DNA from: Pecten maximus
Lineage: Eukaryota
DNA: 64,000 nt
Assembly (NCBI RefSeq): GCF_902652985.1
Contig: NC_047015.1
Coordinates: forward strand, 48,546,001 to 48,610,000
Direction: 5' to 3'
Shown here: positions 18,816 to 62,344 of the stretch, piece by piece
How the letters are laid out: every line of letters begins with the position of its first letter
How positions within the stretch are numbered: position 1 is the stretch's first letter
Translations under genes and position numbers: made by a program
The notes under the pieces: generated by a model
What the model saw: only the letters and a program-made list of their open reading frames with translations
Databases searched by the model: none
Told to the model about the DNA's origin: nothing

Positions 18816-19133
18816 CGAGGCGTTCAGGCTCTCCGCCTTTTCACAGAGATCGTCGAGTTTGCCTTCCCTGTCTCTAATTTTAACGACATTGTCCATCATA
18901 ATGTCTGTTACTTCTTGTGCCTCTTCCCTGAGCTCATCGAGACTTTTTGAGCGCTGGGCTGGCCTTAGTGGAACAATCTCCTCCGGTAGATTCTTAATAT
19001 TTGGAGTACTAGCACTGTGAACATCGTTAAGTTCAAAGAGATACAAATCGTCTTTCGAATATCCATTTTCTTTGTTCTTTTTGTCCTTCTTTTCCTTTTT
19101 CGCCTTTTTATCTTTCTTGTGTTTCTTTTTCAT
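18816..19133 (-). CDS. VAMP/synaptobrevin-like gene copy 1, exon with Lys-rich N-terminus and R-SNARE motif (155 aa spliced product if this ATG is the start)
   Basis: LDELREEAQEVTDIMMDNVVKIRDREGKLDDLCEKAESLNAS aligns by eye to the synaptobrevin coil ([22 protein letters not shown]) with the zero-layer Arg. Donor TCG|GTAATT at 18815. The ATG directly follows an AG acceptor (TTCTAG|ATG), so an upstream exon probably exists. Confidence 0.88.
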
Positions 19134-22851: not shown

Positions 22852-24765
22852 ATGATTTGATAAAGGATCATAATGCTGGTACATTTTATACGTTTCAAGA
22901 TTTTACACAACTGTATCGAATACGGACTAATTTTCTCCAATATCATAGTGTCATTTCAGCTGTAAAAAAGTTCAATCCCAATCCTGTTCTCCCCATGCTG
23001 GAAATAACACGTCCATTTATTCCAGTAAACTTTGAATTTTTTTTAAACATTCCAAAGGGTCGAAACACTTTATAACATTATGATCAGAAATAATATTGTG
23101 CCCTCAGGACAAAGAAAATGGAATTCAATTTTTGATAGAAGCAATATTTACTGGAGTCAGGTTTTCAAACTTCCGTTTATTGTAACTAATAACACAAAAT
23201 TCCAATGGTTTCAATATAGAATCAATCACCATATTCTTACAACAAACTCTCTTTTATTTAAAACTCGAATGGTGCCATCGCCTTTGTGTACACTGTGTAA
23301 CTCAGAGATTGAAACCATTATTCATATTTTATGGGAATGTCAGGAGGTTCAAAATCTTCTTCTTAGCTTTGAAACTCTTTTAGATACACTCCTTATTCCT
23401 TTTGGTTTTAATAAACAATCATTTTTATTCGGTCTTCTCACACAAAATGTAAATGGTAAAATTGATAATGAAATTCTCATTGTAATTAAACAGTACATAT
23501 ATAAAATGCGCTGTCTGCATAAGTCCTTAAATTTAAATGCTTTAATAAATACTATACAGGACTATTTTAATATACAAAGATGTGTAGCCTATAGCAAAGG
23601 AGGTATGTATAAGGAGAGATTTAGAAACGAATGGCTAAAATGGGAAAAAATAATTAGGTTATAGCTTTCATTTCATAATATATTTAACTGACATGTCTCC
23701 TAGACTCTAAAACACTAAACTGGTCAATAATTTTGCTTTGTTGCTCTGATAATATATTGTGATTTTTCCATCCTCTTTCTCTCCCTTTTTTGTCTATTTA
23801 TCTTTCTATTTATGTATGTCAATACTGTCTGTATGTCTGTGTCTCTGTTTAGTCTGTCTGTGTCTTTCGGTCTAAGTAGGTTGGTGTTAGTCTATGTATC
23901 TGTTTGTCTGTATATGTCTGTCAGTCTTTCTGTATATGTCTGTGTCTCTGTTTAGTCTGTCTGTGTCTTTTTGTCTAAGTAGGTTGGTGTTGTTAGTCTA
24001 TGTATCTGTCTGTCTGTGTGTATGTCTGTCAGTCTTTCTGTATATGTCTGTGTCTCTGTTTAGTCTGTCTGTATCTTTCTGTCTAAGTAGGTTGGTGTTG
24101 GTTTATGTATCTGTCTGTGTATGTTTGTCTGTTTGTCTGTACATGGATGAATAGCAGGATAATAGAAACAGAATGTGTGTTTAATATGCATTTTCTTATA
24201 TATTTATGTATACAATAATATATACAACATGTGTAGTATGTGTGCACTTGTATGGGTGTATTTGAGTTGTAGTAGGTGCGGTATGTGGATATGTTTTCAT
24301 GTAAGTGCTGTGTGTACATGCCAATGGATGGATATCAAAATAGTACATGTATGTGTAGTAAAGCATGTGTGCTCATTGTCATATGCAATAGTTAGTATAT
24401 GACTATATGTAGTACGTATGAACATGTATATGTGTATAGTATTGTGTACATGTATGTATATGTACTAGAACATTCATGTGTGTGGGAAGGTGTTTGCGTG
24501 GGGTGTGTCATTCTCATTCATCAGAGTTACTTCCCTTCGTTTCCTATGTCACTCGGTCAGTACGGTGGTATAGCGTAGCTTAGCAGACTCTGGGGGGCGA
24601 GAATGGGGGTGTGTGGGTGTGTATGTGTGTGTGTAAGCTTGTGCGTAGTAAATTATAATAGAAATACACATCAGTGCTGAAAGGTGTGAATGACCATAAA
24701 ATGTAGATGTCTTGTGTTTGCTGATAATATATGTTTAACTGAATAAAATATAAATTACAAAAAAA
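22852..24765 (+). mobile_element. 5'-truncated LINE (L1/Tx1-like ORF2 C-terminus plus 3' UTR) with poly(A) tail and 16-bp target-site duplication
   Basis: ORFs with FQYRINHHILTTN and the zinc-binding motif CTLCNSEIETIIHILWEC, stop at 23664. AATAAA near 24742 then an A-tail. TSD aatatatcatatctta at 22836-22851 and 24766-24781. Absent from the paralogous position near 8350. Confidence 0.9.
23830..24140 (+). repeat. Three copies of a ~105-bp TG/TCTG-rich unit in the LINE 3' UTR
   Basis: tatgtctgtgtctctgtttagtctgtctgt...ctaagtaggttggtgtt recurs at about 23832, 23935 and 24043. Confidence 0.8.
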
Positions 24766-26647: not shown

Positions 26648-26791
26648 CTAAGGAATGAAAAGTATCATTAGTACTATAGTTATAATAATTAAGCAACAGA
26701 CACCTGCAGCAATAAGCATTATAGTCCGTTTCTTATTTTTCAACCATTGTTTTCTTCGTATCGACACCGACGTCTTCTGGAACATCTCAGT
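26648..26791 (-). CDS. VAMP/synaptobrevin-like gene copy 2, last coding exon with transmembrane anchor
   Basis: Acceptor TTTCTTTTCACAG|ACT; encodes TEMFQKTSVSIRRKQWLKNKKRTIMLIAAGVCCLIIITIVLMILFIP*. This is the C-terminal part of the 26648..27106 ORF; the rest of that ORF is intron. Confidence 0.88.
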   Translation of the reverse strand, partial: TEMFQKTSVSIRRKQWLKNKKRTIMLIAAGVCCLIIITIVLMILFIP

Positions 26792-27100
26792 CTGTGAAAA
26801 GAAACAAAACAAATAAAAGATAATAATTTTTTTAATATCCTGCTTTGCAACTAAGATTGAACAAAAGACATACTCGTGAATAAGACATTTAAATATGAAT
26901 TTAGAAACAGATACTGTATATGTCAAATTATGAATAAAAAAACTGCATAATACAATTGTTACGACCTTGTAGGACTCGACAGTAATTCTAAGAACATCAT
27001 ATATTGTTCTTCTTTTAGCTCTAATAAGTGATACAGTAATGGACATCGGAAGTTTAGTTTTGGACAACCATGCATATCTGTAACAAACGCCACATACCCG

Positions 27101-27712
27101 AATCACTAGCCCACAGGGTAAATCACTAGTCCCCAGGATAAATCACTAGACCCCAGGATAAATCACTAGCCCCCAGGATAAATCACTAGTCTCAAGGGTA
27201 AATCACTAGCCCCTTGGGTAAATCACTAGCCCCTTGGGTAAATCACAAGCCCACAGGGTAAATCACTAGCCCCTAGGGTAAATCACTAGTCCCAAGGGTA
27301 AATCACTAGTCCCCAGGATAAATCACTAGACCCCAGGATAAATCACTAGCCCCTAGGGTAAATCACTAGTCCCAAGGGTAAATCACTAGCCCCTTGGGTA
27401 AATCACCAACCCACAGGGTAAATCACTAGTCCCCTAGGTAAATCACTAGCCCCCAGGATAAATCATTAGCCCCTAGGGTAAATCACTTGTCCCCTAGGGT
27501 AAATCACTAGTTCCCAGGATAAATCACTAGCCTCTAGGGTAAATCACTAGTTCCCTGGGTAAATCACTTGTCCCAAGGATAAATCACTAGCCCCCCCCCC
27601 CCCCCCCCTCCCTCCCCCCCCCCCCCCCCCGCAGGGTAAATCACTAGTCCCAAGAGTAAATCACTAGTCCCAAGGGTAAATCACTAGCCCCAAGGGTAAA
27701 TTACTAGCCCCT
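27101..27712. repeat. 20-bp minisatellite (consensus about AATCACTAGYCCCNAGGGTA, roughly 29 copies, one poly-C interruption) in the VAMP copy 2 intron
   Basis: Directly visible 20-nt periodicity; poly-C tract at about 27591-27630. Confidence 0.95.
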
Positions 27713-28814
27713 ATGACAAACTATATCAAGATACTGGGTACAATATTTATAATGTCGCTGTATTATATCATGCATGCCTAGCTGGGAAAATCAAGGTAGA
27801 TTTGTTCCCAGCTTGATTAATTTAATATTTAAAGAAAAGTATCGAGTGCTCGAGATCACTTGCTTAGTAATAAATGTATTTGGTTTTAAACTAAATATAT
27901 TAACTTGAAATTGATTCGCTGATGAATTAGGTTGATGTGGACAGGAAGTATATGCTATATTTATTTGAATTCATGTTAATCCTATCTTTTTAACATAGAT
28001 GCCATCAAAATAAGCATCAAGACTTACTTAATCAGTTATGATATATTGATCTGTCAAACTCTACTTTGTTGATATCTGATATTCCATTTATGAAGGCGCC
28101 TGAAAAAATATCTTAGAGGTAGCTTTGGCATTTGCTTTTTCGTAAATTTCTGAAAGGCCACTTCTTGGCACTGGCGTATATATATACCAGATAAGTGAAA
28201 TATAAGTCCTCAAGGAAACTGTAAATATAAAAGTCGATTTATCACGGTCATTTTAGAAATGTCATTCTGCGCCTGGAAATGTAATTCCGAATATAATATA
28301 TTAAGAGCTCCTGATCGATTCCTGCATTCTTTCATATCTGTACACACGTATATATCTTCCCATGGAAACCTTTCACTTGCACAGATTTTCATTACCCTAT
28401 CAAAATAAACACCCCTGTATAGATAACAAACGTGAGGCTATTTCCATCAATTGAGTCAATCACGTTCCACGTTTACTGGTAAAGAGCACCTCAAGAAAGG
28501 AGATGAATGCCCTATTATAATTAGTATTTGTTTTGTTCATAGATACCACTGCTACTTTATTATAACATGTACCTTGAACAAGTTAACATTTCTGATGAAG
28601 TTATCTATTTGACAGCACATTTCACCTCTTTATGTACCTGTAAAGTGACTTTGAATAGACATCGTAACATCCTGTCATGATACTGATGCCGTAATAAAAA
28701 AACTTTTAATTCAGCTATATTGCAACATCTATACTAATGAGTATCATATCTAATTCTCCGAAGATAAGGTATATTTTAGAAGTATATTATTTAACGGGTT
28801 TTAAGTATAATTAC

Positions 28815-29132
28815 CGTAGCGTTCAGGCTCTCCGCCTTTTCACAGAGATCGTCGAGTTTGCCTTCCCTGTCTCTAATTTTAACGACATTGTCCATCATAA
28901 TGTCTGTTACTTCTTGTGCCTCTTCCCTGAGCTCATCGAGACTTTTTGTGCGCTGGGCTGGCCTTAGTGGAACAATCTCCTCCGGTAGATTCTTAATATT
29001 TGGAGTACTAGCACTGTGAACTTCGTTTGATTCAAACAGATACAAATCGTCTTCCGAATATCCATTGTCTTTCCCCTTTTTGTTTTTCTTTTCCTTTTTT
29101 GCCTTTTTTTCTTGCTTGTGTTTCTTTTTCAT
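28815..29132 (-). CDS. VAMP/synaptobrevin-like gene copy 2, exon with Lys-rich N-terminus and R-SNARE motif (153 aa spliced product)
   Basis: Same 318-nt length as 18816-19133 with a nearly identical SNARE motif; donor ACG|GTAATT at 28814; acceptor TTCTAG before the ATG. Confidence 0.88.
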
Positions 29133-33466: not shown

Positions 33467-34199
33467 AGTCAATGTTCAGTTATGTTAACATATATCATCA
33501 TTTCAGATCAAATAAATATGAGCGAGTTGCGTTAGCCGTTATACTGAAGGGACATTAAGATGTATTTAAATGGGTTTATAACCGTTACATATATATATTA
33601 ATATACATACATGTATATATATGTCAAGTAGTAATAACGACAGTACAGACAAGTAAATTGTCAAATTTTCGAGGCAATCTGCCCCTTTATCAAGACACAG
33701 GTAAATTACATACGATCACATATAGACATAGAACATGGAACAGTTACACAAATATTATGATAATTGCACAAACCGAAACTGAAACCGAATTCAATTTCCA
33801 AGTAAAGAAACATTGTATTTATAGTAAATGATTTTACTGCAAACATATAACCGATCACATGTTTATCAAAAATAGAACTTAATATATATATATACGGTAA
33901 AATATCAAAGTAACGAGGTAACATTATTTAACATTTTTGTAACGTTCTTAAGACATATGCATTATAACATCGTTTCTAAAACATATCCTATTAAAGGGAG
34001 ACTACTCGTGCGTATCTGTCAATTTTAAGACTGATTCGTAGTGTGCCAGCACAATGTCTAATCGACACAAGATATCATTTTCATATCACAAATTGTATTC
34101 GATCAAGTTTTTTTTGTTATGTACTATGGCCTAATAAACAGCATATGCGATCGTAACCTCTGGAGTATAAATGATGAATCAGAATAGGTATTCAAATTT

Positions 34200-34420
34200 G
34201 ATAATTGCACAAAACGAAATTGAAACCGACTTTAATTTCCGAGTAAAGGGACACGTTATTTATAGTAAATGATATTATTACCAAAATATAACTGAACACA
34301 TGTTTATCAAAAATAGAATGGTAATTCCCGGCTATTGACCAATGGACAGACGCCACACCAATACATTAAACCTTATCAGATACCTGGAAATTACCAGCTC
34401 AAAACCATTTTCTATTGATT
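34200..34420 (+). promoter_or_regulatory. Putative promoter of paralogue 1: ISRE-like, two kB-like sites and a CCAAT box
   Basis: GAAATTGAAAC 34216-34226 (duplicate GAAACTGAAAC 33775-33785); GGTAATTCCC 34320-34329 (reverse GGGAATTACC); CCAAT 34339-34343; GGAAATTACC 34386-34395. The block is conserved upstream of paralogues 2, 4 and 7. Confidence 0.55.
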
Positions 34421-34532
34421 CCCGCTATATGCAGAACACTGGAGAAAAGCTGCATGTTGAGGAGCGTATCGGCGCTCTATCAAATTATATATTTACAGTT
34501 GTACGTCTGGAAATATAATCCGAAAAATCAAC

Positions 34533-35594
34533 ATGACGATTTTATCGCTGCGTCCGTCAGAAATTCGCTACAGTCAGGATAGTATCGCTTATTACTTCGG
34601 ATATGGAAGTTATTCTGGAAAACAGATAGGACAGACAGTGGATGCTCTTTTACAACGTGAATGTGACGTTGATGATATTCCAAGAATTACCGTTACTTCA
34701 CGTAACGGGTTATGGTACTCCGGTGACAACAGGCGACTCTGGGTGTTCCGAACATGTGAGGAACTTGGGTTCATCGACAGAGTTCCGGCGATGGAAGGAT
34801 ACGTAAGTTCTTCTAAGTTTACCACTTACAATGATGGTGTGTCAATACGTATCCGTGGGAATCCTGGAGGGCGGATATGGCCACGGAGACATCGTAAAGA
34901 ACTTGTTATCAAAGAACCTGAGCCATCAAACCCTGTCGTGCCAAATGTGCCTGTGGTAAATTCAACACTACGTAACGAATCCGTGGTGATATCATTGGTG
35001 GAGGATGAAGAATTACACCATGGGCTGTCAGATTCTTCTGAAGACTTGACAGACATTCCCAGTGACTGTGGTCAATCCGGTGTGTTAGAATCTTCTGTGA
35101 TTAAACACTGTTCAGAAGAAACAGAGTCTTGTCACGAATCAATGTCATCCAATTTGGAGGATGGTATGCCAATTGGACAAGATAACCACGGATTTGATTC
35201 AGATGAAGATGGCCAACACCACGTCGATGGGACCAAGGATTTAGCATCAACATATGGAGTACGTTTCCGGTCTACTCAGGATGAAATAGTATTGCCAGAC
35301 AATACCTATGTAAGTGTGGATATGTCGACGATGGATGAGTGTCCACTTTCCAGTGACCAGCCCGCTTCGGTGGATGTCGAAACTAACAATTCAACTTTGA
35401 CGGACACTAACCATTCCACTGTGAGTATGCCGGGAGAATCTGTTGATGTTGAAAGTGGACCAAAGGTCAGAGCCTCACGATTAACATTTGAAAACATCCG
35501 TGTTGTCCTTTCAAAATATCGGTATACGATGGTGGTGTGTCTGATATTGGTTGCCATAGTTATCCTGGTACTGATAGTTGTGTTTAACACATAG
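34533..35594 (+). CDS. Family paralogue 1: ParB/Srx-like N-terminal domain, acidic linker, C-terminal transmembrane anchor (353 aa)
   Basis: Uninterrupted ORF. Motifs PSEIRYSQDSI, IPRITV, WYSGDNRRLWVFR and KFTTYNDGVSIRIRG are conserved across paralogues. Hydrophobic tail MVVCLILVAIVILVLIVVF; no signal peptide. Fold assignment is from motif recall only. Confidence 0.9.
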   Translation: MTILSLRPSEIRYSQDSIAYYFGYGSYSGKQIGQTVDALLQRECDVDDIPRITVTSRNGLWYSGDNRRLWVFRTCEELGFIDRVPAMEGYVSSSKFTTYNDGVSIRIRGNPGGRIWPRRHRKELVIKEPEPSNPVVPNVPVVNSTLRNESVVISLVEDEELHHGLSDSSEDLTDIPSDCGQSGVLESSVIKHCSEETESCHESMSSNLEDGMPIGQDNHGFDSDEDGQHHVDGTKDLASTYGVRFRSTQDEIVLPDNTYVSVDMSTMDECPLSSDQPASVDVETNNSTLTDTNHSTVSMPGESVDVESGPKVRASRLTFENIRVVLSKYRYTMVVCLILVAIVILVLIVVFNT

Positions 35595-36229
35595 AATATA
35601 CATTTCCTCACACACACGAAAATCGTCTGTCTTACGTAATACCACTATATATTGAAAAAACTCATGAACCTTGAATCTTACGCGTGTAATCCAGTTTTTG
35701 TATATTCTAATCGACAGGTAATTGTTTGTAAGATAATATGACTGCAGAAACAACCGTCAATATCTGCTTGATTATGATTATGTGAGTGAACACAAACAAT
35801 GTAATTTTTCTTTACTATTCATTTTTTTTTTGAAAACTGGACAGATATTTTTCACGTTAACATCGCACATCCTATGACTTTGATGATATAGATTTGAGAT
35901 ACGCGATTCATTAACAAAGAAAAAGTGCTATCTGTATGTTCACCGAATTAATCAGTAATTGCAGATTATTTTTTTATTGAAATCTGAAAATTATATGTTA
36001 ATTATGTTACTGAAGGCCTGAAGTAGTAATATTCATGAACAAATGAAAAATTACTAATCTTTGTAAACTATACTGCAATAACCTACTTTCAAAAGCTCCT
36101 TACATGCATAGGTACATATGTCTCGTGACTCTAAAAAAGTTGCGGTGGGTTATGTTGTTATTGCTTTGTGTGTGTGTCTGCGTGTATGTGAGGGCAAATG
36201 TGAGTCCGTTCGATTAACAAAACGTGTGT

Positions 36230-37800
36230 ACCAGGCATATATTGAACCCTTCATCTGATTTTGTATCTATCCATAGCACAGTGCCACATTAATTTTTATT
36301 TAGGATCTAACACACTATTTGATAGTATAATTTATTATGTTTATGAAGCCATACCAAAGATAATGATAACCATCAAATGTCTTTTTCTGCTTATTATGTT
36401 AACAATGTGCAGACAGTTTAGATTCAAGTGTGCTTCATCGAGGACAAATTGAAACACGACTTGTGTTTGTTCAACGTCAAAATCATCAGCCTCAGAAAAC
36501 GTTTCTGTTTTAAATGAAATGTATTTAAAGTTATCATTTCTACAATTATAGTGTTAGGTTTAATCACCATTTAATCATAAGGAATGAACGGGGTGATAAA
36601 TCGGTCTAACGATATATAGACAGAAAACCGAATTGCTCCCTTTTTACCGTTCGGAGTCGAGGGGGTAGCTCGGAGTGCAATTCGGTTTTCGGTATACTTC
36701 GATGCACCAATTTGATATCTCGTTAAATTTGTAATTGTTGATAACTTGTTACAAGTTGTTCAAATGACTATGTATGTATTCTACAGATATATATTAAACC
36801 CTCAAATAAACCCTCAATTGATTCTGTGCCTATGCATACTTTAGAGCCACATCAAGTTTTAATTCTATTTGGGATGTAACGTTCCTTTTCATAGAATTAT
36901 CTATTATGTGTTTCAAGTGATTACAAAGATATTGTTTACCATCAACATATCGTTTTCTGTGGATTATGCGAACAATATGCTTGTTTTTTTTAGATTAAAG
37001 CGTGCTTCATCGAGAACATTTGAAACACGACCTGTGTTTGTTAAACATCAATATATTCTCATGTTAGATTTTCGCCCGTCATATGTTAAAATTGAGTTAT
37101 AAGGAATGAACGAGGTTATAAATCGGTCTTTCGATGTATTGACAGAAAACCGAAATGCTCTCTTTTTACCGTTCGGGAGGGGTATTACTTTATGTGCAAT
37201 TCGGCTTTCGGTATACTTCGATGCACCAATTTGATATCTCGTTCAATTTTTATTTATTAATTATTTGTTATAAATTGTTCAAATGACCCTGTTTGTATTT
37301 TATTGATATATACTTACCTCTCATATGATTTTGTGCCTATTCATAGTTTAGTGTCACATCAAGTTCTGGTTTTATTTGGGATGAAACGTTCATTTTCATA
37401 GGATTATCTATTATGTCGTTCTAGTGATTACATGGATATTGTTAACCATCAACATATCGTTTACTTCGGAATATTCGATTAAGATTGAAGTGCGCTTCAT
37501 CTAGGACAATTTGAAACACGACCTGTGTTTGTTCACGGTCAAACTTATCCGCCTTAGAAAATATTACTGTTGTAAATCAAATATATCTTCGTATTAGATT
37601 TTCCCCGTCATATGTTGAAATTTAATCATAAGGAATGAACGAGGTTATAAATCGGTCTTTCGATGTATAGATAGAGAACCGAAATGCTCTCTTTTTACCG
37701 TTCGGGAGGGGTTATTAGTCGAAGTGTAATTCGGTTTTCGGTAACTTCGATGACCAATTTGATATCTCGTTCATTTTTTTATTGTTGATTATTTGTTTTT
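36230..37800. repeat. Three diverged ~500-570-bp tandem units, each with an inverted-repeat hairpin
   Basis: Marker gaaacacgac at 36451, 37022 and 37513; inverted repeat GAAAACCGAATTGC...GCAATTCGGTTTTC at 36623-36690. Confidence 0.8.
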
Positions 37801-39594
37801 AGTGTTCAGAGGACAATGTGTGTATTCATCAAATGATTGCTTTAACAAAAAATTTTTTTTTTAAAAGCCAAAAGCCATCTGTGATAAATTTGTTCATGGT
37901 TTATTTATATGTATGTTATCAATTAAATTTGATTAAATTACCTGTGTTGTTATATTTACTGGTACACTTGTATTAAATGCAAGAAGCAAACGTCATTTTA
38001 TTGAAGAATTGAAAATATCTTTTTCTTCCTGGACACACAGACATATTTAACTCTCTGTTCCATATACACTCCTTTCACAACACTTCAGCGTAAAACAAAC
38101 GTCCATGCAGTGAAACAATTGTCATTTACATGGATACAAGTGTATCACTAAACATTTAAGATAAAGAACATTGTTTAAAATGACATAACCGTTCTCATAC
38201 GATAAAAATGATCACACGCTTCTTACGTATTCTGGTAGGTCTGATTTGACCTCATTGAACTTGGGACGTCGCGTTTGTTCCAATGTAGGTGAAACATGGA
38301 GTAGTAACATCCAGTGTGACAAACAATGACCCTAAATATATCTTCTGTGATTTCTCCTAAGAGAACATGAACGAGACAAAATAATATTTGTGTTCCCCTA
38401 ATGACATATTTCTTTCTTTTAGGGTCTTTTTTTCAATTCTTTCTCCCTTCCATTAAAGTGACACAAAACCAGTGTATATTTAAACACATCTTACATGTAT
38501 GTATCTGTAAGCTTATTAGTTAAGATTGATTGGTAAAAAATGATAGATAGCACATATTTAATTCGATTTATGTTAACATTTAAAATATAATACATTCGGT
38601 TATGACTATTTGTTATCTATTAAGCCCTAATAAAATATCAGAGTGGGTATTTTTGGCAATAGCAGAAAAGAAAATGAAATATCCCTTTCCGATTAAGAGT
38701 AATGAATACTGAAAAATGTACATGAATATAAAAAAAGCTTTACCTCGAAATGTACAAAAAAACGATATATGATATGATATATCAAAATGTTCGTCTAAAT
38801 GTCTTCTATTCATTGGTGTTAAATCCAAAGAGGCAAGTATTACTGACAGCAACAGATACTTGCTAGAAACGTCTTTCCACTAGAAGTGTCTAATAATCTA
38901 ATAAAATCACAATTTTGAAAAACATAAAAAGTAAAACAATTTTCAGATATTAGTCGAGTTTGTGGGACCCCTATTATTTATGCCTGAAGTCTTAACAAAG
39001 GAGAAGCTTTTATTATGGGTGACAACATTAGCGGAAGCCATTTGTAATTTACATAAGGGAGGCCACTCCTATAGGACTACTTTCGACAACAATTAGGCAA
39101 TATATGCTACCTTCAACGAAATATCATTTATTGTTCTCTTTATTCAATGTTAAGTTCTGTTATATATAAACATTTCAGTTCAAATAAACATGAGTGGCAT
39201 GCTTTAACAGTAATAATGAAGAGACATCACCATGTAAATGAATTTATAACGGTTACCATGGGATATATATAGTTAACTACCACATTAATGAGGTAAAATA
39301 TTATTTTAGATTTTTATAACATTCTTTAGACATAATAATGCATGATACATTGCCATCGTTTCTTAATCATTGCCTATTAAGGGGGGACTACTCGTGCGTG
39401 TCTGTCAATATTATGTAAGACTGACCGTAGTTTGCTAGCACATCGTTTAATCTACAACATATATCATTTTCATATCACAAATTGTATAAAGAATTCGATC
39501 AATTTGTTTCGGTTGTTATATACTTTTGCCTAATAAACAGCGATCGTAACCCCTGGAGTACAAATGATGAATCAGAATAGGTATTCAAATTTGA

Positions 39595-39815
39595 TATTTG
39601 CACAAAACGAAATTTAAACCGACTTTAATTTCCTAGTAAAGAAACACTTTATTTATAGTAAATGATATTACTACTAAAATATAACTGAACACATGTTTAT
39701 CAAAAATAGAATGGAAATACCCGGCTATTGACCAATGGACAGACGCCACACCAATACATTAAACCTTATCAGATACCTGGAAATTACCAGCTCAAAACAA
39801 TTTTCTATTGATTCC
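39595..39815 (+). promoter_or_regulatory. Putative promoter of paralogue 2
   Basis: GGAAATACCC 39713-39722, CCAAT and GGAAATTACC 39779-39788; the ISRE-like site is changed to GAAATTTAAAC at 39609-39619. Confidence 0.5.
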
Positions 39816-39925
39816 CGCTAGATGCAGAACACTGGAGAAAAGCTGCATGTTGAGGAGCGTATCGGCGCTCTATCAAATTATATATTTACAGTTGTACGCC
39901 TGGAAATATAATCCGAAAAATCAAC

Positions 39926-40987
39926 ATGACGATTTTATCGCTGAGTCCGTCAGAAATTCGCTACAGTCAGGATAGTATCGCTTATTATTTCGGATATGGA
40001 AGATATTCTGGAACTCAGATCGGACAAACAGTGGACGATCTTTTACAACGTAAATGTTACGTTGATGATATTCCAAGAATTACCGTTACTTCACGTAACG
40101 GGTTATGGTACTCAGGTGACAACAGGCGACTCTGGGTGTTCCGAACATGTGAGGAACTTGGGTTCATCGACAGAGTTCCGGCGATGGAAGGATACGTAAG
40201 TTCTTCTAAGTTTACCACTTACAATGCTGGTGTGTCAATACGTGTCCGTGGGAATCCTGGAGGGCGGATATGGACACAGAGACATCGTAAAGAACTTGTT
40301 ATCAAAGAACCTGAGCCATCAAACCCTGTCGTGCCAAATGTGCCTGTGGTAAATTCAACACTACGTAACGAATCCGTGGTGATATCATTGGTGGAGGATG
40401 AAGAATTACACCATGGGCTGTCAGATTCTTCTGAAGACTTGACAGACATTCCCAGTGACTGTGGTCAATCCGGTGTGTTAGAATCTTCTGTGATTAAACA
40501 CTGTTCAGAAGAAACAGAGTCTTGTCACGAATCAATGTCATCCAATTTGGAGGATGGTATGCCAATTGGACAAGATAACCACGGATTTGATTCAGATGAA
40601 GATGGCCAACACCACGTCGATGGGACCAAGGATTTAGCATCAACATATGGAGTACGTTTCCGGTCTACTCAGGATGAAATAGTATTGCCAGACAATATCT
40701 ATGTAAGTGTGGATATGTCGACGATGGATGAGTGTCCACTTTCCAGTGACCAGCCCGCTTCGGTGGATGTCGAAACTAACAATTCAACTTTGACGGACAC
40801 TAACCATTCCACTGTGAGTATGCCAGGAGAATCTGTTGATGTTGAAAGTGGACCAAAGGTCAGAGCCTCACGATTAACATTTGAAAACATCCGTGTTGTC
40901 CTTTCAAAATATCGGTATACGATGGTGGTGTGTCTGATATTGGTTGCCATAGTTATACTGGTACTGATAGTTGTGTTTAACACATAG
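39926..40987 (+). CDS. Family paralogue 2 (353 aa; 11 amino-acid differences from paralogue 1)
   Basis: Uninterrupted ORF with the same architecture as 34533..35594. Confidence 0.9.
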   Translation: MTILSLSPSEIRYSQDSIAYYFGYGRYSGTQIGQTVDDLLQRKCYVDDIPRITVTSRNGLWYSGDNRRLWVFRTCEELGFIDRVPAMEGYVSSSKFTTYNAGVSIRVRGNPGGRIWTQRHRKELVIKEPEPSNPVVPNVPVVNSTLRNESVVISLVEDEELHHGLSDSSEDLTDIPSDCGQSGVLESSVIKHCSEETESCHESMSSNLEDGMPIGQDNHGFDSDEDGQHHVDGTKDLASTYGVRFRSTQDEIVLPDNIYVSVDMSTMDECPLSSDQPASVDVETNNSTLTDTNHSTVSMPGESVDVESGPKVRASRLTFENIRVVLSKYRYTMVVCLILVAIVILVLIVVFNT

Positions 40988-53980: not shown

Positions 53981-55003
53981 TAAATCTCATAAAGATCAAA
54001 TACTAAAAGATAAAAATATCTCTGTATATATGCTTCTGAATATGCCTAGATATTTTAAATATAAAATATATAGATGGTATTTCTGTACCTAACTTTCGAA
54101 TGTTGTATTTCAAAATTTGTTTCTAACAAAAGAGACATGAATGACGTATCTTAAACGCCTAGATGTGATTGTTGACACGTGGAAATTAAAACAAGTTTCA
54201 ATTTTCAAGCGTTTGCTCATTATTTCAAATACATTTGATTGCAATGTTAAGGGATTCAAAGTCCATTGGCTACTAAGTTATGGAGTGCACATCAAAAAGA
54301 GTGGGTGCTTATAGAGTTACTGTATGACATGATATACTAAAAGTATATAGATACAAATCTCATTTTTTTGTAAAAGAAAAGCAATTGCTTGAAACCCTAA
54401 TATATGTATGTTGAAAAACCTTGAATACAAATTGCGCATGCAAACGTCATATTGAATGTCACATTGTATGCCGTGTTAAAATTCTTATAAGTATTAGCAC
54501 TTTTTATGTATAACATAGTAACAAATGACGTAGGAAGACAATTTATATGGCTCGTGCCCCGCCTTGGCCTCGACCCAACGATCTACGGCACCTAATCACC
54601 TAGCTACAAAGCTTACCTTAAGTCCAAATTCTTATAAATGACGTTTCAACAGAGCAGTGATCATCGGCCCGGTACCCTGGCATGATCATAGTGACAAACC
54701 ATCAACTAGCTGATGTGATTACCTTGATCGCAATTTGTATACATACATCGATGCAAACTGTTAACATATAACAACATTTCAATATGGTACAATTACGACA
54801 GGAATTTCAAATAACGAAAGGAGAGGATTTTATGACTTGTGCTCGGACCGGACGTCGAACTCTCGATTATTTTTTTTCTGTAATAAACGTATGTCCTTAT
54901 TTTGCTACACTTTATAAAATGTTTTCCTTTCCATGGAAGGAATCAACGTGAGAAGTTGAATTTCGCTAATGTTTGTTTAATGTCTTAGCTACGACATTAT
55001 ACA

Positions 55004-55181
55004 TATAGGATATTGAATGGTTTCCCTGTGAATATAACATATACTTCACTCATATGACAGAATATATCGTTCTTCGCATTCGTGAAAAAAAAACAATATT
55101 CTGTAACACTCGTGTACACTCTGTCAAACGAGTGAAATATAATCTATAATCAACGGCAAATTATTCAATTTTCTTTTTATT
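55004..55181. mobile_element. Short palindromic non-autonomous element, same family as 33320-33466
   Basis: tattgaatggtttccctgtgaatataacatatacttcactcatatgacagaat ... gagtgaaatataatctataatcaacggcaaattattcaat. Confidence 0.6.
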
Positions 55182-56139
55182 GCATTTTATGCTAAAAACA
55201 AAATGAAAGACATCGAAAAGTAATAGTCGCAAGAAGTGCGGGAATCAGTAACATAATTCATGACGTTGTCTCTTTGTGACGTTATTCATGACAAACAACT
55301 TTTGAAAGGACTGATCAGTGCAATTTAAGCGTTTTCTGCTGTTTTCGGAGAATGTATGCATGAACACCAAACGCCAAGTTAGTATTTTGTCAAAACTAGT
55401 CTGAATATTTAAGAAATACAGTAAAATAACCCATCTACATCTCTCCGCTTTGATTGGAAAAATCGGCAAATTTTAATGAGGTGAATACAAAGGTTTGCTC
55501 TGATGAAAAGTAAAAGTGTAAAACTTTAAAAGTCCATTCAAAAACGAAAAATTTATATTTTTACTGCAAAATCTGTTTTTGATCCGTTTGATAAATTTCT
55601 TGATTACATAAGGCGATTGATTTCCTTAACTAAAGGCGTAAGGTATATTATGAACTATTACACGGCTAAAATGACTATTTCTCGGTCACTTGCGAACTAT
55701 TGAACACCTGTTTAATTTGATAATTAGTGTTAATAGTTATTTTGGCTGTAAATCGTAAGAAGTAATAAAACGCCATGTGTGACATTAAATTTTCTTATCA
55801 GGATGCATTATATAATGCATAACCCCGTTGTATAAATGCAAACAATACAGTTTGCGCATTTACGGAAGCATTGGGATTAAAGATAGGTCGGAACGGACGG
55901 TATTTACACTACGAACATTTTATAGGCCTCTTTGACCCCTATGAAGTTACATATCAAGACAGGTTCAATGGAAACGTGTTAAAAAGACATGTATATGCAT
56001 GCGTATTCCGACATCTAGATAAGTATATATACGCGCGTGTTAAAATAAAGGTTTGTGTTTATAAACGACAACATCTATATCTGTATCACAATGAAAAGAT
56101 AATGAAACCTTTGTTTGATCACAGGATAGGCCGCATACA

Positions 56140-56520
56140 TGACGGGAAATCTCGCTTTTCTAAGGTAAAATCTAATAGGCTGAGTCGACCGCGTTGTACT
56201 TGTGAAACTGAAACGGGTTCATTGCGGTTAGGCCACAGGTTTTCACTATATATCTAAAACGAAAGTAACTATCGCATTTGCACTCTGTCGACCTTTTGTT
56301 TTACGAAATGGTGTATCTTCAACAAAACTTCATTCCGGTTACACTTTAAGGGCAACATTACAACATTTCCTTATTCTGATTAACCTGAAATGTTCTTTAT
56401 TATACGAGTGTACATCACGCGTAATGTTCATGTTTAAATTAGATAAAAATGACGATAAGAAATTGGATTATCCAATGAATGGTGAACAAACTATTTTTAA
56501 CGCCCGGGAATTTCTACCTT
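56140..56520 (+). promoter_or_regulatory. Putative promoter of paralogue 6 with ISRE-like and kB-like motifs
   Basis: GGGAAATCTC 56144-56153, GAAACTGAAAC 56204-56214, AAAACGAAAGT 56256-56266 and GGGAATTTCT 56506-56515. Confidence 0.45.
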
Positions 56521-56534
56521 CATCAGTTATATAA

Positions 56535-57587
56535 ATGATGTACAGCAAATTAAACAAACAGTTCTCCCATCGTACTCTTTTATGCAAAATGACGGTTTTG
56601 TCCCTGCGTCCTTCCGAAATTCGCTACAGTCAGGGCACTATCGCCAGGTGCTTTAAAAATGGACGCCATTCTGAAACACCGATCGGACAGACATTGGATG
56701 ATCTAATAGAACACAAATGTACCATTCATGATATCAAAAAAATTACCGTGACTTCACGTGACGGAATTTGGTATTCAGGAGACAACAGACGACTATGGGT
56801 GTTCCGAAAATATGAAGAACTTGGAATCATCGACAGAATTTCCGCAAAAGAAGGGTATGTTCATTCGCAAAAGTTCACAACTGACAACCATGGTGTGTCA
56901 GTACGTGTTCGTGGGGATCCTGGTGGACAGGTATGGAGGAATTTTAAAGAGCTGATTATCAAAACAACTGAAACATCAAAAGCTGTTGACATCAGGGAGT
57001 CTAAGGCTAGTACACTACAAAATAACAATTCCGTGGTAATATCACTTGTGGAAGATGACATACAGCCATCAAACCATGAACTGTGTGATTTTTCTGAAGA
57101 GTTGAAAGCCAGTGTCATGATAGAACCTTCGCTGGGTAAAGGATATTCAGAAGAAACTGGTTCTTGTCTCGAACGTACTTCATCCTACGTGGAGGATGTT
57201 ACAACAAAGGGGCAAGAAAACCTAGTAGATGCTGGAAATGAAGATGACCGCCAGCATGTCTGTAGGACCAATGACTTACCTTCAACAGAAAGGATGACTT
57301 TTCGGTCTACTCATGATTCAAATTGTATAGTGTCAAACAATAACTACGTAAGTGCGAACTTGTCTTTGTTGGACGGCTCTCCAGTTTCCAGTCACCATTC
57401 GGTGGATATCCAAACTATCCATTTAACAGTGAGCAGACCTGGGCAATCTGCTGATAGACAGAAACTTACAAAACTGTGTCTAACGCGTATTTCAGAAAAG
57501 TGTATTACTCCACATTGTATATGTTTTATATTTATTGCAAGTATTGTGTTGATGTTTTTGTATTTTGCTATTTTGGTTTTCACTTGA
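56535..57587 (+). CDS. Family paralogue 6; the start homologous to the other paralogues is ATG 56589
   Basis: MTVLSLRPSEIRYSQGTI...WYSGDNRRLWVFR...KFTTDNHG; linker partly alignable to paralogues 1/2 (SVVISLVED); tail CICFIFIASIVLMFLYFAILVF. Confidence 0.9.
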   Translation: MMYSKLNKQFSHRTLLCKMTVLSLRPSEIRYSQGTIARCFKNGRHSETPIGQTLDDLIEHKCTIHDIKKITVTSRDGIWYSGDNRRLWVFRKYEELGIIDRISAKEGYVHSQKFTTDNHGVSVRVRGDPGGQVWRNFKELIIKTTETSKAVDIRESKASTLQNNNSVVISLVEDDIQPSNHELCDFSEELKASVMIEPSLGKGYSEETGSCLERTSSYVEDVTTKGQENLVDAGNEDDRQHVCRTNDLPSTERMTFRSTHDSNCIVSNNNYVSANLSLLDGSPVSSHHSVDIQTIHLTVSRPGQSADRQKLTKLCLTRISEKCITPHCICFIFIASIVLMFLYFAILVFT

Positions 57588-60500
57588 AAATAAAAGAAGA
57601 TGTATTGAAATATATTTCATATGATTTTATGTGCAGTGTAATTCACATAAATACATGACACAGAAACAGAAACACCGAAGGAAGAATTTTTCCAACGGCG
57701 TCTTAATATGACATGAATGCAATCTGATACTTTGATCTCAACGTCTTTTAATTCTTAATGGAATTAATATTTTCATGAAAAAGTTTTATATACATATATA
57801 AGTGTTACTTCTAAGTAAATAATTACATAATCTATAATTTACCACATAACTATGCGTTGGAATTCATTTGCAAGTATATATCATAAGTGATGTGGAAGAT
57901 AGGAAAGTATATACCGGTATTTTAAGATTATCTAACTTTCCGCCCGTTTAGATGTCTTTTCGTTCCGTTGTTTCCATCCTAGACATTATTTTAAGGATGT
58001 CATATAACCCAGATTCGACCTAGATTTACATAGGAATTTAGTTATTGTAAATTAAGGAAAAGACGCTTAACCTCTAAGAACACATTGTCTTTTTTTCAAC
58101 CTTTGATACCAATGTTCAAAATAGAATTGAGAATAATGAATGTTGCTTTATTTATGGATTATACATACACTCTGTATTGAAGAATAGTCCACGAATATGT
58201 ATTTCAGTATAGACATCACACCTTCAGAAATAGATAACATATCGTATACCAGCTATTTTTGTGAGTGTCCATTTTTGCGATATATCGCTGTAGTTTGATA
58301 CCGCATATACATCATGCTAAATATTGTTCTTTTTCGCAGAAAATACTCATGTTGCAAAACTTCTCAACATTGGTAACATTCAGTCAACAGGATGTAGCAA
58401 GTGTTAGACAAATAGGTGTAATCTCAATAAAACTCATATCAAAGTGCTGCAGATAGAAACACTTAAAGCAGCCGGAAAAGAGTTATAGATATCAAGAGAA
58501 TTCAGACTGTAACCTATGACATGAAGGACACTAATAAAGGATATGGTATTATCATATATCATGTATACGCAAATCGCTATATCAATACGATATCATAATA
58601 CTAAAAGAGCTAATTGAAACTAAATCCTGTTATTTCAAAATGAGCATCATGTTATTAAAAGGTATTATGCTGATAGTTTGACAAAAGTGTATGTGAAACT
58701 TGTGATACCGGATTTCTTTTTTGGGGATTTTTTAAATATTATCTACTGGTATGTCTCATTTTTATATTTATGTAACTTGTGAATGCTTATTTTATTGGAA
58801 TGTGCTCGGTACTCTAGGTATAAGGATAAATGAATGTTTCGTTGAAATATTTAGATGAAGCATGAACATTTCTTTAAGCTCAAACATCCAATATAATACC
58901 AAGGTGTATCAATACATGTTTTCAATGTCACTTATAATAATTAGCCTTGAATATCACTCATTAAATGTTCATACCACAGTTTTATCAAACTATGCCATTA
59001 CGCAACTTTGTGTTGTAATGAATGTCACGATATCGATTCCCTTCTTTAGAATGGTGTGGCATGATATTCCTAGTATGAAAAATATACTTTCGGTTTCGAT
59101 TTGATAGCTTTCGTAAAACAGTTTTCGTTATCTTATCAAATATATCGCTGGTAAAATTGATATGATTGTTGAAACATTATTTATTGTCAAGGTCGATATT
59201 CCAAAACGTAATGCAACTTAAGCAGGTGAAAGGTAAAATCTAGATAGGCATCTATATAGTATGTCGGTTTCGTTTTCATATAGTGTGTTACTTACAAAAA
59301 AGGGGCATGACTCTTGGTGGCCAGTGTCTTCTGGTGCAATCTTCTAAATTGCTAAAGTTGGATGGATTTTTACAGCTGAATCAATGATATAACAACCTAT
59401 TAAAAAGTCGCATGCAATACTAGCTTACTTTAGACCGACCGTCCTATTATCATAATTATTATCATTAGTATCCACCATCCCCGATTTTTACTGTAACATT
59501 GTAACTGAAAGGTATTGTTGTACATTTCACGCGAGGTACTATCCTATGTATCATTTATTTCTTTTCTGTCTGTTTCATTCGTCAACCTCCTTCTCCATTA
59601 TACCATTTCTCCTTCATATGACTATAGACAATATGACAATTCAATGGATTGTAAAATTAATTCCTGTATGACACATAAGAACATGTGAAATTGATTTGTT
59701 GTTGTTTTTTTTTTGTTTTTTTTTTTTTGTTGTTGTTTTTTTTTTCAAATTCAATATCGTATGATAAAAGATGTTTAAAACATATTACTGAAAAACTAAA
59801 GAACGAAAATTAACGACAGAGTCATTATCATACTGACAGCAGGCGAACCAGTCCTTACTACTAAATAGCATATATATAAAAAGTCCCATTTGTTCATTTA
59901 TACCAATTATTATCCATAATTCATTTATTAATTATTATTTGTTTGATGCTGTTTGTCATATAAAGTTCATCTGACATCGAGTTATTTTTGCTTAAATTGT
60001 AACAGTTTTGTTTTAGGACTAAATCACCTACAAAGTGAATCGCGTGTTTCTGTCTTCCCCAAAATTCGCGAGCCGGGTTCAATTTTGTTTTTGGCTGGTT
60101 TCATTTTCATAACTTTGCATTGGGATTTCCACACTTTCCGACACTTGTCCTAGAAAGAGAAAATATTCGGATAATAAAGCTGTATTTATTATTTGTTGGA
60201 TATAATTTATATTACAAAAACACAAGCAAATGCGTTTTAAGTTCACATTTTGCATCATCATTAATTACATGTAATACTTGAAATATATTGATATTACCAA
60301 ATACTTCAAAGCAGATATCTTTTCAATTCAAATATTTAACATATTATTGTAAAATGATATTTTTTACACTTTTTTATTTACTAAAATTACATACTAAAGC
60401 TTGCATTTATTGTATTGACTTCGTCTTTGATCGTAGTGTTATGAGGTAAATAAAATTACGTATACGACGTTATCAAAAGGTGATAATCATGTAATATATA

Positions 60501-61574
60501 TATATAATACAATATACACATGATTTAAAGGTATTCCGTAAATGATGGGAGCTATGACCTCGATGAGTGTAATTCAGTGTAATGCGTCCTACGCGCAGGT
60601 AATAGGTTTTAAGCGAAATTCAATTGAAATTATTTGTTTAAATTAAGCTACATGTAAAAGGAGAATAAGCCCTTCAAAGTTTCACCCAATAGCAATACAC
60701 GGTCGTTATAGACATGCGGTCGTTATATATAGGCGGTCGTTTGAGCAGGTTTGACTGTATTTACACTTTCATCTTTTCCAAAAATAATGTCTAGGCATAG
60801 ATTATTTCAATATGGATTTCCGGCTATATTTATATGAGCAGACTTGTTGAATTAGACAGCATAAACTTCTATGATGTGAAACCTAAATGTTCTTTTTTTT
60901 CCATAAAATGTCTTATCTTTAATTGCTTGTTGAAGAAGCAAACTTGGATTTTATAGTGTACTCTAGAACAAAACGAAATTGAAAAGAGGTAACTCGATTT
61001 CCAGTTAACTAAAATGTATCGAAATAGTTAAAGACTCTGAACCATTATGAATTTAAATAGGACCTGCTAACATTTTCAGATTATACAGCCTTCGGTCATG
61101 ATTGTTTGCTATTGATTTAGCCCTAATAAAAATCACAATAGGTATTCTACTTTGGGGATTGCACGAAACGAAAATAAAACTAATAACTATTTCCGACTAA
61201 AAGGACAAACAAACCAAATAATGAAAACAACTGGATCTTCAGTTCAATCTTTTTCCACGGTAAATTGTGCGAATTCCGCAGAAAAATCGAAGAAATCTGT
61301 ATTTTTCAACTGCTTATTATTATGACCTGAACTTTTGAATAAAACTCATAATGACATACCAAATTTATATCAACATTACCTATGAATAATTATCTATTCA
61401 GGCTACATATCTACATGTTTATTGGAACTTCACAATATACTGGCAAATCTGGGGCTGCCAAACATTTTACCCTTGCTTCAACCTTGTATACACAGGGGCA
61501 AATTTCAAAAGCTTATTTTCAATTGGTTGGTTATTCCCAAAATGTATTTCAATATAGAATCAATGCAATAACTA

Positions 61575-61685
61575 TTGAAATAGATTGGTAATTCCAGTGT
61601 TGACAAATGGACTCACGCCAAATCGAATACAGTGAGCTTAATTAATCAGCTGGAAATTACCAACTCAAATCATGTTCTTGTTATT
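61575..61685 (+). promoter_or_regulatory. Putative promoter of paralogue 7, homologous to the paralogue 1/2/4 proximal block
   Basis: GGTAATTCCA 61587-61596 and GGAAATTACC 61652-61661; upstream GAAATTGAAAA 60975-60985. Confidence 0.45.
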
Positions 61686-61690
61686 CTATA

Positions 61691-62344
61691 ATGAGTCCAC
61701 GGAAGACAATCTATAGGTACATTAGTATTTCATCAACGACTGAGCAGAAAATGAAAATGATGGGTCAGACATTGGACAACCAAGTGGAACCCGATTGCTC
61801 CATTCAGAATATTCCTGAAATATCAGTTGTTGCAGATAACGTACGGCCATCAAAGCTATCGTTATCGTCGGAAGAGATGACAGACAATGTCATTGTCTAT
61901 GATAATTCTGCCACGTTAGAACATTTTGGGAGCAATGACTCTTCAGAAAAAAATGGCTGGTGTAAGAAATCAACTTCATCTGATTTGGAGGAAGGCACAG
62001 CAAAAGAGCGCGACAGTCCAGTTTTTGATTCAGATGAAGAATACCAACAGCACGTCTGTGTGACCAAGGATGGGATGCCTTTGCCGTCTACTGAGGATGT
62101 GTTGTCAGACAATAGCTGTGTAAGTGTGGACTTGGATGTACGTCCACTATCCAATGATCAACTTAACAACTCATCGGTGGTGGAAACTAGTCACCCAATA
62201 TTTACTGAGCTGGTGGTACATGATGATATGCCAGATTGTCCACCTGGGTGTTGTGGTCGCTTTGAATTGATTGGAACACTTGTGTTGCACATTTTGCAGC
62301 TTCTCACTGCGTTTATCCTTCCTATAGTGTTTTGTTTTATATAA
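61691..62344 (+). CDS. Family paralogue 7: open frame retaining linker and TM but with most of the N-terminal domain deleted
   Basis: Only GQTLDNQVEPDCSIQNIPEISV remains of the domain. The linker (SEEMTD, SSDLEEG, FDSDEEYQQHV, DNSCVSVD) matches paralogues 1/2/6. Tail LIGTLVLHILQLLTAFILPIVFCFI; the family promoter block is present at about 61575-61685. Confidence 0.7.
   Translation: MSPRKTIYRYISISSTTEQKMKMMGQTLDNQVEPDCSIQNIPEISVVADNVRPSKLSLSSEEMTDNVIVYDNSATLEHFGSNDSSEKNGWCKKSTSSDLEEGTAKERDSPVFDSDEEYQQHVCVTKDGMPLPSTEDVLSDNSCVSVDLDVRPLSNDQLNNSSVVETSHPIFTELVVHDDMPDCPPGCCGRFELIGTLVLHILQLLTAFILPIVFCFI

Follow-up and report, generated by a model that had tools for sequence, protein, structure and literature searches.

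What kind of protein would an animal maintain in a tandem array of intronless genes that carry a domain resembling a bacterial toxin? The question is raised by a 64-kb window of a chromosome of Pecten maximus (king scallop; NC_047015.1, positions 48,546,001 to 48,610,000), in which seven co-oriented paralogues occupy positions 34533-62344. A previous interpretation of this DNA, made from its letters alone and here called the sequence-only reading, had proposed an undescribed animal immune effector system formed by tail-anchored proteins with a ParB/sulfiredoxin-like, toxin-type domain. The analysis presented here identifies the array as a new, unstudied animal variant of a toxin-domain family that is known computationally, and not as a categorically new system. 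We favour, with somewhat better than even confidence, the interpretation that it is an animal branch of the Tox-ParBL1-type family, in which a nucleoside triphosphate (NTP)-using domain is tethered by a tail anchor so as to face the cytosol and likely acts in biological conflict.

The paralogues, numbered 1-5 and 7 plus a pseudogene, all lie on the + strand. Five are intact, one is the pseudogene, and one lacks the half of the domain that bears the motifs. In tblastn searches, copy 1 as the query returned five further copies, and a more sensitive pass added a frameshifted, stop-interrupted seventh; the six open reading frames (ORFs) and the pseudogene thereby agree in number, position and orientation with the sequence-only reading. 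Copy 1 (34533-35594) encodes 353 amino acids (aa), with the ParB-like domain at 34533-34892 and a tail-anchor helix at 35529-35585 that ends two residues before the stop. Its linker is acidic and Ser-rich, and its net charge of -27 is the lowest among the linkers of the array, which are rich in Ser, Asp and Glu. Copy 2 (39926-40987), also of 353 aa, is a recent duplicate of copy 1 with 97% aa identity, and its protein matches NCBI protein model P0002 exactly. Copy 3 (45368-46177) encodes 269 aa and has an intact domain. Copy 4 (51760-52419) is an ORF of 219 aa with the domain starting at 51841, a short acidic linker and the anchor at 52345-52401. The pseudogene (about 53424-53964) retains remnants of domain and anchor spread over three frames; its three-frame translation still shows part of the hydrophobic tail and has in-frame stops within the domain, one of them immediately past DNRRL. 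Copy 5 (56535-57587) is an ORF of 350 aa with the domain from 56589 and the anchor at 57525-57581; its probable start is 56589, which would give the 332 aa of NCBI model P0004. Copy 7 (61691-62344) is in frame and encodes 217 aa, with the anchor at 62279-62335. It had been described as domain-less, which holds for the second half of the domain, as both the DNRRL helix and the KFTT..RG block are lost. A first-half remnant, MGQTLD..IPEISV, aligned to domain residues ~32-56, is kept together with linker and anchor. An eighth copy (L022; 303 aa) with a strong anchor was found 3.2 kb beyond the window end.

Hydropathy analysis revealed one strong C-terminal helix in copies 1, 2, 4, 5 and 7, which ends 1-5 residues before the stop and reaches Kyte-Doolittle 19-mer (KD19) values of 2.4-3.8. 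The corresponding stretch of copy 3 is short and weak (KD19 1.49). No N-terminal hydrophobic segment was detected by hydropathy in any copy of the array (N-terminal 12-mer at most 0.5), and past residue 120 Pfam recognizes no domain, the remainder consisting of a low-complexity acidic linker and one transmembrane (TM) helix. Judged by hydropathy, the proteins display the features of tail-anchored proteins, namely one TM helix that lies no more than about 30 residues from the C-terminus, and the lack of a signal peptide, with copy 3 as a weak case; the sequence-only description of these C-termini was accurate apart from that copy. Because the N-terminal domain lacks a signal peptide and precedes an acidic, disordered linker and one hydrophobic helix at the C-terminus, a tail-anchored, cytosol-facing topology is predicted, and the proteins would be inserted post-translationally with the domain toward the cytosol. 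Copies 1 and 2 have a very hydrophobic helix and a C-terminus that is short and uncharged, which would favour the endoplasmic reticulum (ER)/GET route.

The five intact N-terminal domains align with a mean column identity of 76%. Invariant or nearly so are P8, S9, I11, R12, Y13, S14, Q15 and I18 in the first block, I32, G33, T35 and D37 in the second, and I49, T53 and V54 in the third. These are followed by Y62, D65, N66, R67, R68, L69, W70, V71, F72 and R73, by E76, E77, L78 and G79, and by K95, F96, T97, T98, G102, R108, G109, P111, G112 and G113, so that every motif picked out by eye in the earlier interpretation is recovered in the alignment. Residues Q15, D65, N66, R67, R68, L69 and G102 are invariant from bacteria to scallop, N66, R67 and R68 being so in 30 bivalve sequences as well as in the bacterial ones. 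The pattern R-[YF]-[ST]-Q-x-S is common to animals and bacteria, with mostly Ser or Thr at position 14 and Ser17 conserved at 90% or more.

The fold of the domain was approached by modelling. A first AlphaFold2 (AF2) model, built from the five paralogues only, reached a predicted local distance difference test (pLDDT) score of 67, and still Foldseek matched it only to structures of ParB or sulfiredoxin (Srx) type. The model built on an alignment of 30 bivalve sequences has a pLDDT of 94.7 and a predicted template-modelling score (pTM) of 0.89. A Foldseek search of this model against the PDB retrieved Noc, ParB, Atu1540, sulfiredoxin, SbnI, KorB, SerK (free serine kinase), PF0380 (1vk1) and PadC, with no other structure above noise level; the best matches were 6sdk, 7ol9 and 7bnr (ParB/Noc/KorB), with a best E-value of 7e-4 and a probability of 1.0. 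VIA-align, an aligner independent of Foldseek, was run against 48,161 representative chains. Its top ten chains all belong to the ParB/Srx superfamily (Z 7.9-3.1): Atu1540 (7.9), Arabidopsis Srx (7.1; 6ky4), SerK (6.5), SbnI (5.9), KorB (5.8), human Srx (5.6; 1yzs), PadC (5.4), pNOB8 ParB (5.0), Osa (3.7) and Spo0J (3.1), while unrelated chains score at most Z 3. The ParB/sulfiredoxin fold assigned by the sequence-only reading, which had named Foldseek as a check, thus holds for the predicted structure. In the model, D65-N66-R67-R68 forms the junction between a beta-hairpin (E52-57, E60-63) and a long helix (H66-77). At this junction, ParB carries GERR and Srx carries GCHR. We infer that DNRR is the residue equivalent of GERR, and of GNHR in the bacterial toxin ToxB discussed below. 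A sequence search of the PDB also brought up the Tre1 ADP-ribosyltransferase (6dre, E 0.79, 30 residues), which is a chance match; the fold searches yield no ADP-ribosyltransferase.

Sulfiredoxin, an ATP-dependent phosphotransferase, is to our knowledge the only well-known animal enzyme with the ParB/Srx fold. It resembles the scallop domain in its fold, as the VIA-align scores of 6ky4 and 1yzs indicate, and in its similar size, and its active-site turn is located at the hairpin-helix junction. By contrast, the catalytic Cys of its GGCHR motif is lacking in the scallop domain, as had been noted before: no Cys lies at or beside the equivalent turn, where D65-N66-R67-R68 is found instead, and there is no sequence-level match between the two. 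Srx is moreover single-copy and soluble, whereas the scallop family is multi-copy and, in this array, predicted to be membrane-anchored. The clamps ParB, Noc and KorB, which gave the best Foldseek matches, agree with the scallop domain in the order in which a box-I Gln and a double Arg occur along the fold, but the scallop protein is an animal protein that has neither helix-turn-helix (HTH) nor C-terminal dimerisation domain nor ParA-binding motif. Use of NTPs by the domain is anticipated because its invariant residues, the box-I Gln and the x-x-R-R turn between hairpin and helix, would sit where ParB, ToxB and Srx bind nucleotide phosphates. The domain would bind an NTP, probably ATP, and either hydrolyse it or transfer its phosphate to a target at the membrane surface.

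The closest relatives outside animals were reached through a scan for DNRRLWV[FL][RKQ] in one genome per bacterial or archaeal species. It led to a contig of 70% GC in a Thermomicrobiales metagenome-assembled genome (MAG), in which a 101-aa ORF aligns with the scallop domain over its full length and shares IRFSQxSI, DIPPIRI, LDNRRLWVFR and KLTTxxEGxSVR. The domain is present in 5 of 401 sampled Chloroflexota genomes and, in two of these, forms the C-terminus of a long protein (511 aa and 560 aa); the 511-aa protein has a WXG100-like N-terminus (WXG100_2, PF25547, E 3.7e-4, below Pfam's cut-off). On plasmids, tblastn located it in Bacillus toyonensis, an oyster-gut Bacillus, Sinorhizobium, Streptomyces and Haliovirga. 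It comes after an RHS-associated core (TIGR03696, E 3e-21) in B. toyonensis p246, among orphan cassettes that include an AHH-nuclease toxin, and after a PT-TG pre-toxin-like region (E 6e-4, below cut-off) in Haliovirga; the bacterial domain was also found as a stand-alone gene. A word-indexed search with the bacterial protein gave one further match only, and a phage collection contained no relative. A profile built from bivalve sequences only scores the bacterial tips at 29-72 bits across the full domain. The scallop domain is homologous to bacterial toxin warheads, and the kinship with the C-terminal ParB-like domains of polymorphic toxins that had been proposed at the outset is substantiated.

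At five bacterial loci from four phyla, the next gene overlaps the end of the toxin ORF or starts within about 20 bases of it. In four of the five this gene encodes a DUF7660 protein (PF24693, E 1.6e-23 to 1.9e-29), and the downstream neighbour in Sinorhizobium was assigned to DUF7660 by evident sequence likeness, without a profile scan. The DUF7660 genes lie at L001:5319-5557, L004:1816-2079, L019:3321-3575, L020:3297-3548 and L021:3307-3558, in Chloroflexota, Bacillota, Alphaproteobacteria and Fusobacteriota. Toxin-immunity cassettes are recognised by just such an order, with a toxin tip first and a small conserved partner next, and DUF7660 is therefore a candidate for the immunity protein that is cognate to the ParB-like toxin domain. 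It is a Pfam family without an assigned function and is mentioned in no searchable paper. At a further Chloroflexota locus (L006:1694-2911), the WXG100-like toxin is followed by a gene for a protein of 405 aa whose C-terminal end is a degenerate copy of the domain, with DNRLL for DNRRL; this protein could be an inactive paralogue that confers immunity or serves as a decoy.

Zhang et al. 2012 (PMC3482391) defined Tox-ParBL1 as the second ParB-fold toxin family, typified by N. gonorrhoeae NGK_2271. Its signature comprises a conserved N-terminal Ser/Thr that is absent from classical ParB, and [NT][RT][RT], mostly RR, as the equivalent of DGHHR. The toxins are delivered by type II, V, VI or VII secretion systems (T2SS, T5SS, T6SS or T7SS) and carry RHS or FilH repeats, with SUKH and Imm44 as immunity partners. 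The authors also listed several metazoans, fungi, plants, kinetoplastids and further groups among the holders, and described these as taken from polymorphic toxin systems, independently of sulfiredoxin (PMC3482391). Each feature of this written definition is recognizable in the scallop family, including the N-terminal Ser/Thr, N-R-R and the predicted ParB fold, and the bacterial homologues found here are likewise the C-terminal tips of RHS, WXG100-like and PT-TG toxins accompanied by a small immunity-like gene. The scallop domain differs in its N-terminal position, its predicted location in the cytosol and its attachment to a linker and tail anchor without a delivery module, and its genes form tandem arrays on an animal chromosome that have no DUF7660 neighbour. 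The partner seen here is also DUF7660, in contrast to the SUKH and Imm44 of the published family (PMC3482391). Because Tox-ParBL1 was defined in 2012 with metazoans among its holders, the earlier term "undescribed" is only partly right; it stands with regard to a characterised animal member and to a tail-anchored bivalve array, neither of which has been reported in the searchable papers. Among those mentioning ParBL1, only Zhang et al. 2012 is relevant. None ties ParB-like domains to bivalve genes or contains the LOC identifiers of six scallop and mussel members, and none describes a biochemical study of a Tox-ParBL1-type domain.

The best experimental analogue is ToxB, the CdiA ParB-fold toxin, which binds ATP, hydrolyses it slowly and requires the Arg of its GNHR turn; its immunity protein occludes the nucleotide pocket (bioRxiv 10.64898/2026.05.05.722872). 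Like the scallop domain, ToxB has a ParB fold and lacks a DNA-binding domain; in ToxB this fold has become a toxin, and its phosphate-binding turn has the x-N-x-R pattern that the putative turn of the scallop domain also displays. Unlike the scallop domain, it is found with ParB_N PF02195, and it has G-N-H-R where the scallop family has D-N-R-R. ToxB is also delivered between bacteria.

The extent of the family in animals was determined by a profile search of 1.84 billion cluster representatives (50% identity), which gave 2,036 matches at E<=1e-3 and 639 at E<=1e-10, with a best E of 1e-83, a similarity well outside what chance would give. All named top matches are bivalve "uncharacterized" or "hypothetical" proteins. 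At least 16 bivalve species hold members, from Pecten, Mizuhopecten, Argopecten, Ylistrum, Mytilus spp., Mya, Mercenaria, Ruditapes, Dreissena, Ostrea, Saccostrea, Tegillarca, Sinanodonta, Potamilus, Mactra and Pinctada; two long-branch members lie outside the bivalves, in the tunicate Styela clava and the annelid Dimorphilus gyrociliatus. The domain comes first in 207 of 223 relatives and is present as two or three tandem copies in 32, and a single relative has an N-terminal hydrophobic segment. A tail anchor was detected in about 43 of them, so the designation of a tail-anchored family suits one scallop subfamily and not the family as a whole. Among 20 multi-domain relatives, Pfam revealed no fusion to TIR, Death or NACHT domains, the sole fusion being to an HSP70-12A-like region (PF00012, E 5e-13) in a 784-aa protein of Mactra antiquata (P0130), which could equally be a gene-model artefact. 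HSPA12 genes are greatly expanded and stress-responsive in bivalves.

A six-frame profile search of the P. maximus assembly (918 Mb, 3,983 contigs) located at least 17 copies in five clusters: the window array with the eighth copy, C1 32.75-32.78 Mb (five copies), C10 (two), C8 (one) and C14 (three). One of the C1 copies outside the window is identical, over the aligned domain, to Pecten maximus LOC117330754. Tail anchors are limited to the window cluster and the eighth copy, and the proteins of the other clusters are soluble with unrelated tails. The divergent three-gene cluster on C14 (27329800-27344800; L029-L031) has RGNRRLY for DNRRLW and His for the invariant Gln of RYSQ, with one of its members inside an open frame of 637 aa; the cluster may represent a subfamily whose function has shifted.

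A quick tree of 247 domain sequences by maximum likelihood, in which root and direction of transfer are not established, places the nine bacterial sequences on one side of a branch (SH-aLRT 92), together with the tunicate, the annelid and a few other long-branch sequences. A clade with a support of 92 unites the window copies and the eighth copy with tail-anchored proteins from Argopecten (P0005), Ylistrum (P0006) and Mizuhopecten (P0007); it also includes a few further members, among them Pinctada sequences whose placement the tree leaves unresolved. Within it, copy 3 and the eighth copy are sisters and pair with the Mizuhopecten protein, and copies 1, 2, 4 and 5 group with those of Argopecten and Ylistrum. 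Therefore, at least two tail-anchored paralogues already existed when these scallop genera diverged, and duplication went on afterwards.

Recent duplication is apparent within the array itself. A segment of about 2.9 kb (33886-36795) that contains copy 1 is duplicated at 39263-42216 with about 91% DNA identity, and the ORFs of copies 1 and 2 inside these ~91% identical flanks are 98.2% identical in DNA. Of the differences between them, 16 of 19 at the nucleotide level and 10 of 11 at the aa level fall within the domain, at non-motif positions, and the 700 nt of linker and anchor differ at 3 sites; this pattern suggests gene conversion or unequal constraint. The ratio of nonsynonymous to synonymous changes (dN/dS) amounts to 0.56 in the domain, a value that derives from very few changes. 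Paralogues older than the genera, later duplications, a pseudogene, a deletion allele and a truncated copy together confirm that the array undergoes birth-and-death evolution, as the sequence-only reading had stated from the recent duplicate and the decayed copies; the lineage-specific clusters and the tree extend that evidence. The array evolves through duplication, probable gene conversion, decay and partial loss of the domain.

Evidence of transcription comes from four small public P. maximus runs that contain 8-12% of the words of 51000-58000. Contigs assembled from them were aligned to 51701-57700, and give neither expression levels nor transcript ends. The copy 5 ORF is covered (56575-57583) by contigs of three studies, two of the runs being declared as RNA-Seq. 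Contigs of run X2, labelled "RNA?", cover 51957-52301 of copy 4 and 53460-53807 of the pseudogene. No contigs from any of the four runs fall in the spacers 52501-53300, 53901-54500 and 55701-56500. This restriction of coverage to the ORFs argues for transcripts. In one study, the RNA-Seq contigs of copy 5 have a 34-nt deletion (56725-56758) in the domain and a 9-nt insertion at 57174 in the linker; the deletion is probably a null allele that segregates in the species. The interval 55003-55504 between copies acts as a short repeat, with high contig depth and loose contig ends.

The toxin ancestry and the evolutionary dynamics of the array are the two grounds, and the only ones, on which a role in biological conflict, in defence or possibly as a selfish element, appears the likeliest. 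An immune role in particular is circumstantial, and several observations weigh against the interpretation that we favour. No Pfam model, including ParB_N PF02195 and ParBc_2 PF08857, matches the domain in the five copies (E<=10), in 30 aligned relatives (E<=1) or in the 20 multi-domain relatives; no NCBIfam or PADLOC model matches it either, and a profile search of the PDB yielded noise only (E>1). Alignment of the family with five Chloroflexota ParB_N domains by hhalign, on thin profiles, gave a probability of 0.1, and none of the profile, PDB and hhalign searches linked the family to classical ParB or Srx at the level of sequence. Zhang et al. 2012 (PMC3482391) had obtained such a link between ParBL1 and classical ParB by HHpred, at 93%. 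The VIA-align scores are moderate (Z<8), though the list is homogeneous. The proposed equivalence of DNRR with GERR and GNHR is based on the order of the motifs and on the predicted secondary structure, and the family does not conserve the Gly of GxxR. The fit to Tox-ParBL1 was judged by the written definition and not against the type member NGK_2271. At 0.56, dN/dS in the domain of copies 1 and 2 does not point to positive selection, the reads are represented by assembled contigs from small runs of which two are only guessed to be RNA, and nothing was found that ties the array genes to infection. Finally, a search of the scallop genome for DUF7660 found none, with controls that were silent too and a model that is strong on the bacterial loci. 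Scallop cells would thus have to tolerate an active toxin domain by other means, for which tethering, low activity and paralogue-based regulation are speculations. A parallel search of the scallop genome for ParBc_2 (PF08857) returned no match, and the control genomes were equally silent.

The favoured interpretation has a narrower form, which we consider unlikely as it stands: the array proteins would be membrane-tethered, cytosol-facing innate-immune effectors that bivalves derived from a bacterial toxin warhead. When infection strikes, they would use up ATP or a different NTP, or phosphorylate a target, at the surface of an organelle or of the plasma membrane, in a manner resembling abortive infection, with catalytically dead or motif-less paralogues such as copy 7 and the deletion alleles taking the place of the lost DUF7660 as regulators or decoys. 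Also unlikely is an ordinary job for the same domain outside defence, as a domesticated enzyme or nucleotide switch that serves either as a membrane-associated kinase or phosphotransferase for a protein or small molecule, as do Srx, SerK and SbnI with their targets, or as an NTP-dependent dimerising clamp, as do ParB and Noc. The structural neighbours indeed comprise kinases and switches besides toxins, the catalytic-type residues are strongly conserved with dN/dS below 1, none of the 20 multi-domain relatives is fused to an immune domain, and Zhang et al. proposed that ParBL1 was absorbed into eukaryotic functions (PMC3482391). A housekeeping enzyme would, however, be unusual in the variable, lineage-specific copy number of this family, in its pseudogenes, deletion alleles and tandem arrays, in its extremely variable tails and in its patchy animal distribution (bivalves, one tunicate, one annelid).

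Two further explanations dispense with a benefit to the host. In a selfish toxin-antidote element, the tethered toxin copies would be the poison, and copies that are degenerate or lack the motif, copy 7 for instance, the antidote, and the element would thereby further its own inheritance. Toxin ancestry and tandem arrays with fast turnover would suit such an element, as would copy 7, which is in frame without the DNRRL half and keeps linker and anchor, and the bacterial locus that pairs a toxin with a degenerate-domain (DNRLL) protein. It is nevertheless very unlikely: the motif-less copy is one of eight and possibly just decaying, and retention by the host fits better with a family that is old, broad in bivalves and composed of clades shared across scallop genera. 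Least probable of all is that the genes are decaying relics of a bacterial transfer or mobile element without present function. The intronless ORFs, the nearby retroelement remnants, the pseudogene, the frameshifting deletion allele and the weak anchor of copy 3 could be so explained, but against this stand five intact long ORFs, motifs that do not vary from bacteria through bivalves, an anchor that scallop genera have in common, contigs that cover the ORFs and not the spacers, and hundreds of distinct clusters in at least 16 bivalve species.

For their defence molluscs have innate immunity only, and they are farmed on a large scale. If an immune or conflict role is true, the array would be a further case of animal defence reusing bacterial conflict domains. 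More than 600 animal cluster representatives (50% identity, E<=1e-10) are at present annotated as "uncharacterized protein" and have no Pfam model, and the sole experimental precedent for a ParB-fold toxin is the 2026 preprint on a different clade, ToxB. The scallop array is tractable in that intact, recently duplicated, broken and motif-less copies adjoin, and in that the putative active-site residues Q15, D65, N66, R67 and R68 are invariant from bacteria to scallop. The bacterial cassettes suggest DUF7660 as a candidate family of natural inhibitors.

Upstream of the array, on the - strand, the window contains tandem VAMP-like R-SNARE (synaptobrevin) genes at 18795-19133 and 28794-29132 (Pfam PF00957, E 8e-9 and 1e-8). 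Their first exons are about 90% identical, and the encoded proteins have Lys-rich N-termini and are likewise tail-anchored. An ORF at 26651-27106 (-) encodes the second half of a SNARE motif and a TM anchor (E 1e-6). Retroelement remnants, in the form of reverse-transcriptase fragments, lie at 13223-17241 (+) and 22692-23664 (+), with RVT_1 (E 3e-6, below Pfam's cut-off) and zf-RVT (E 7e-7) similarity. Contamination as the source of the array was considered and rejected: the DNA is animal DNA of 31-39% GC on a 60-Mb chromosome, flanked by these retroelement remnants and VAMP-like genes, and orthologues of the array genes are present in other scallop assemblies.

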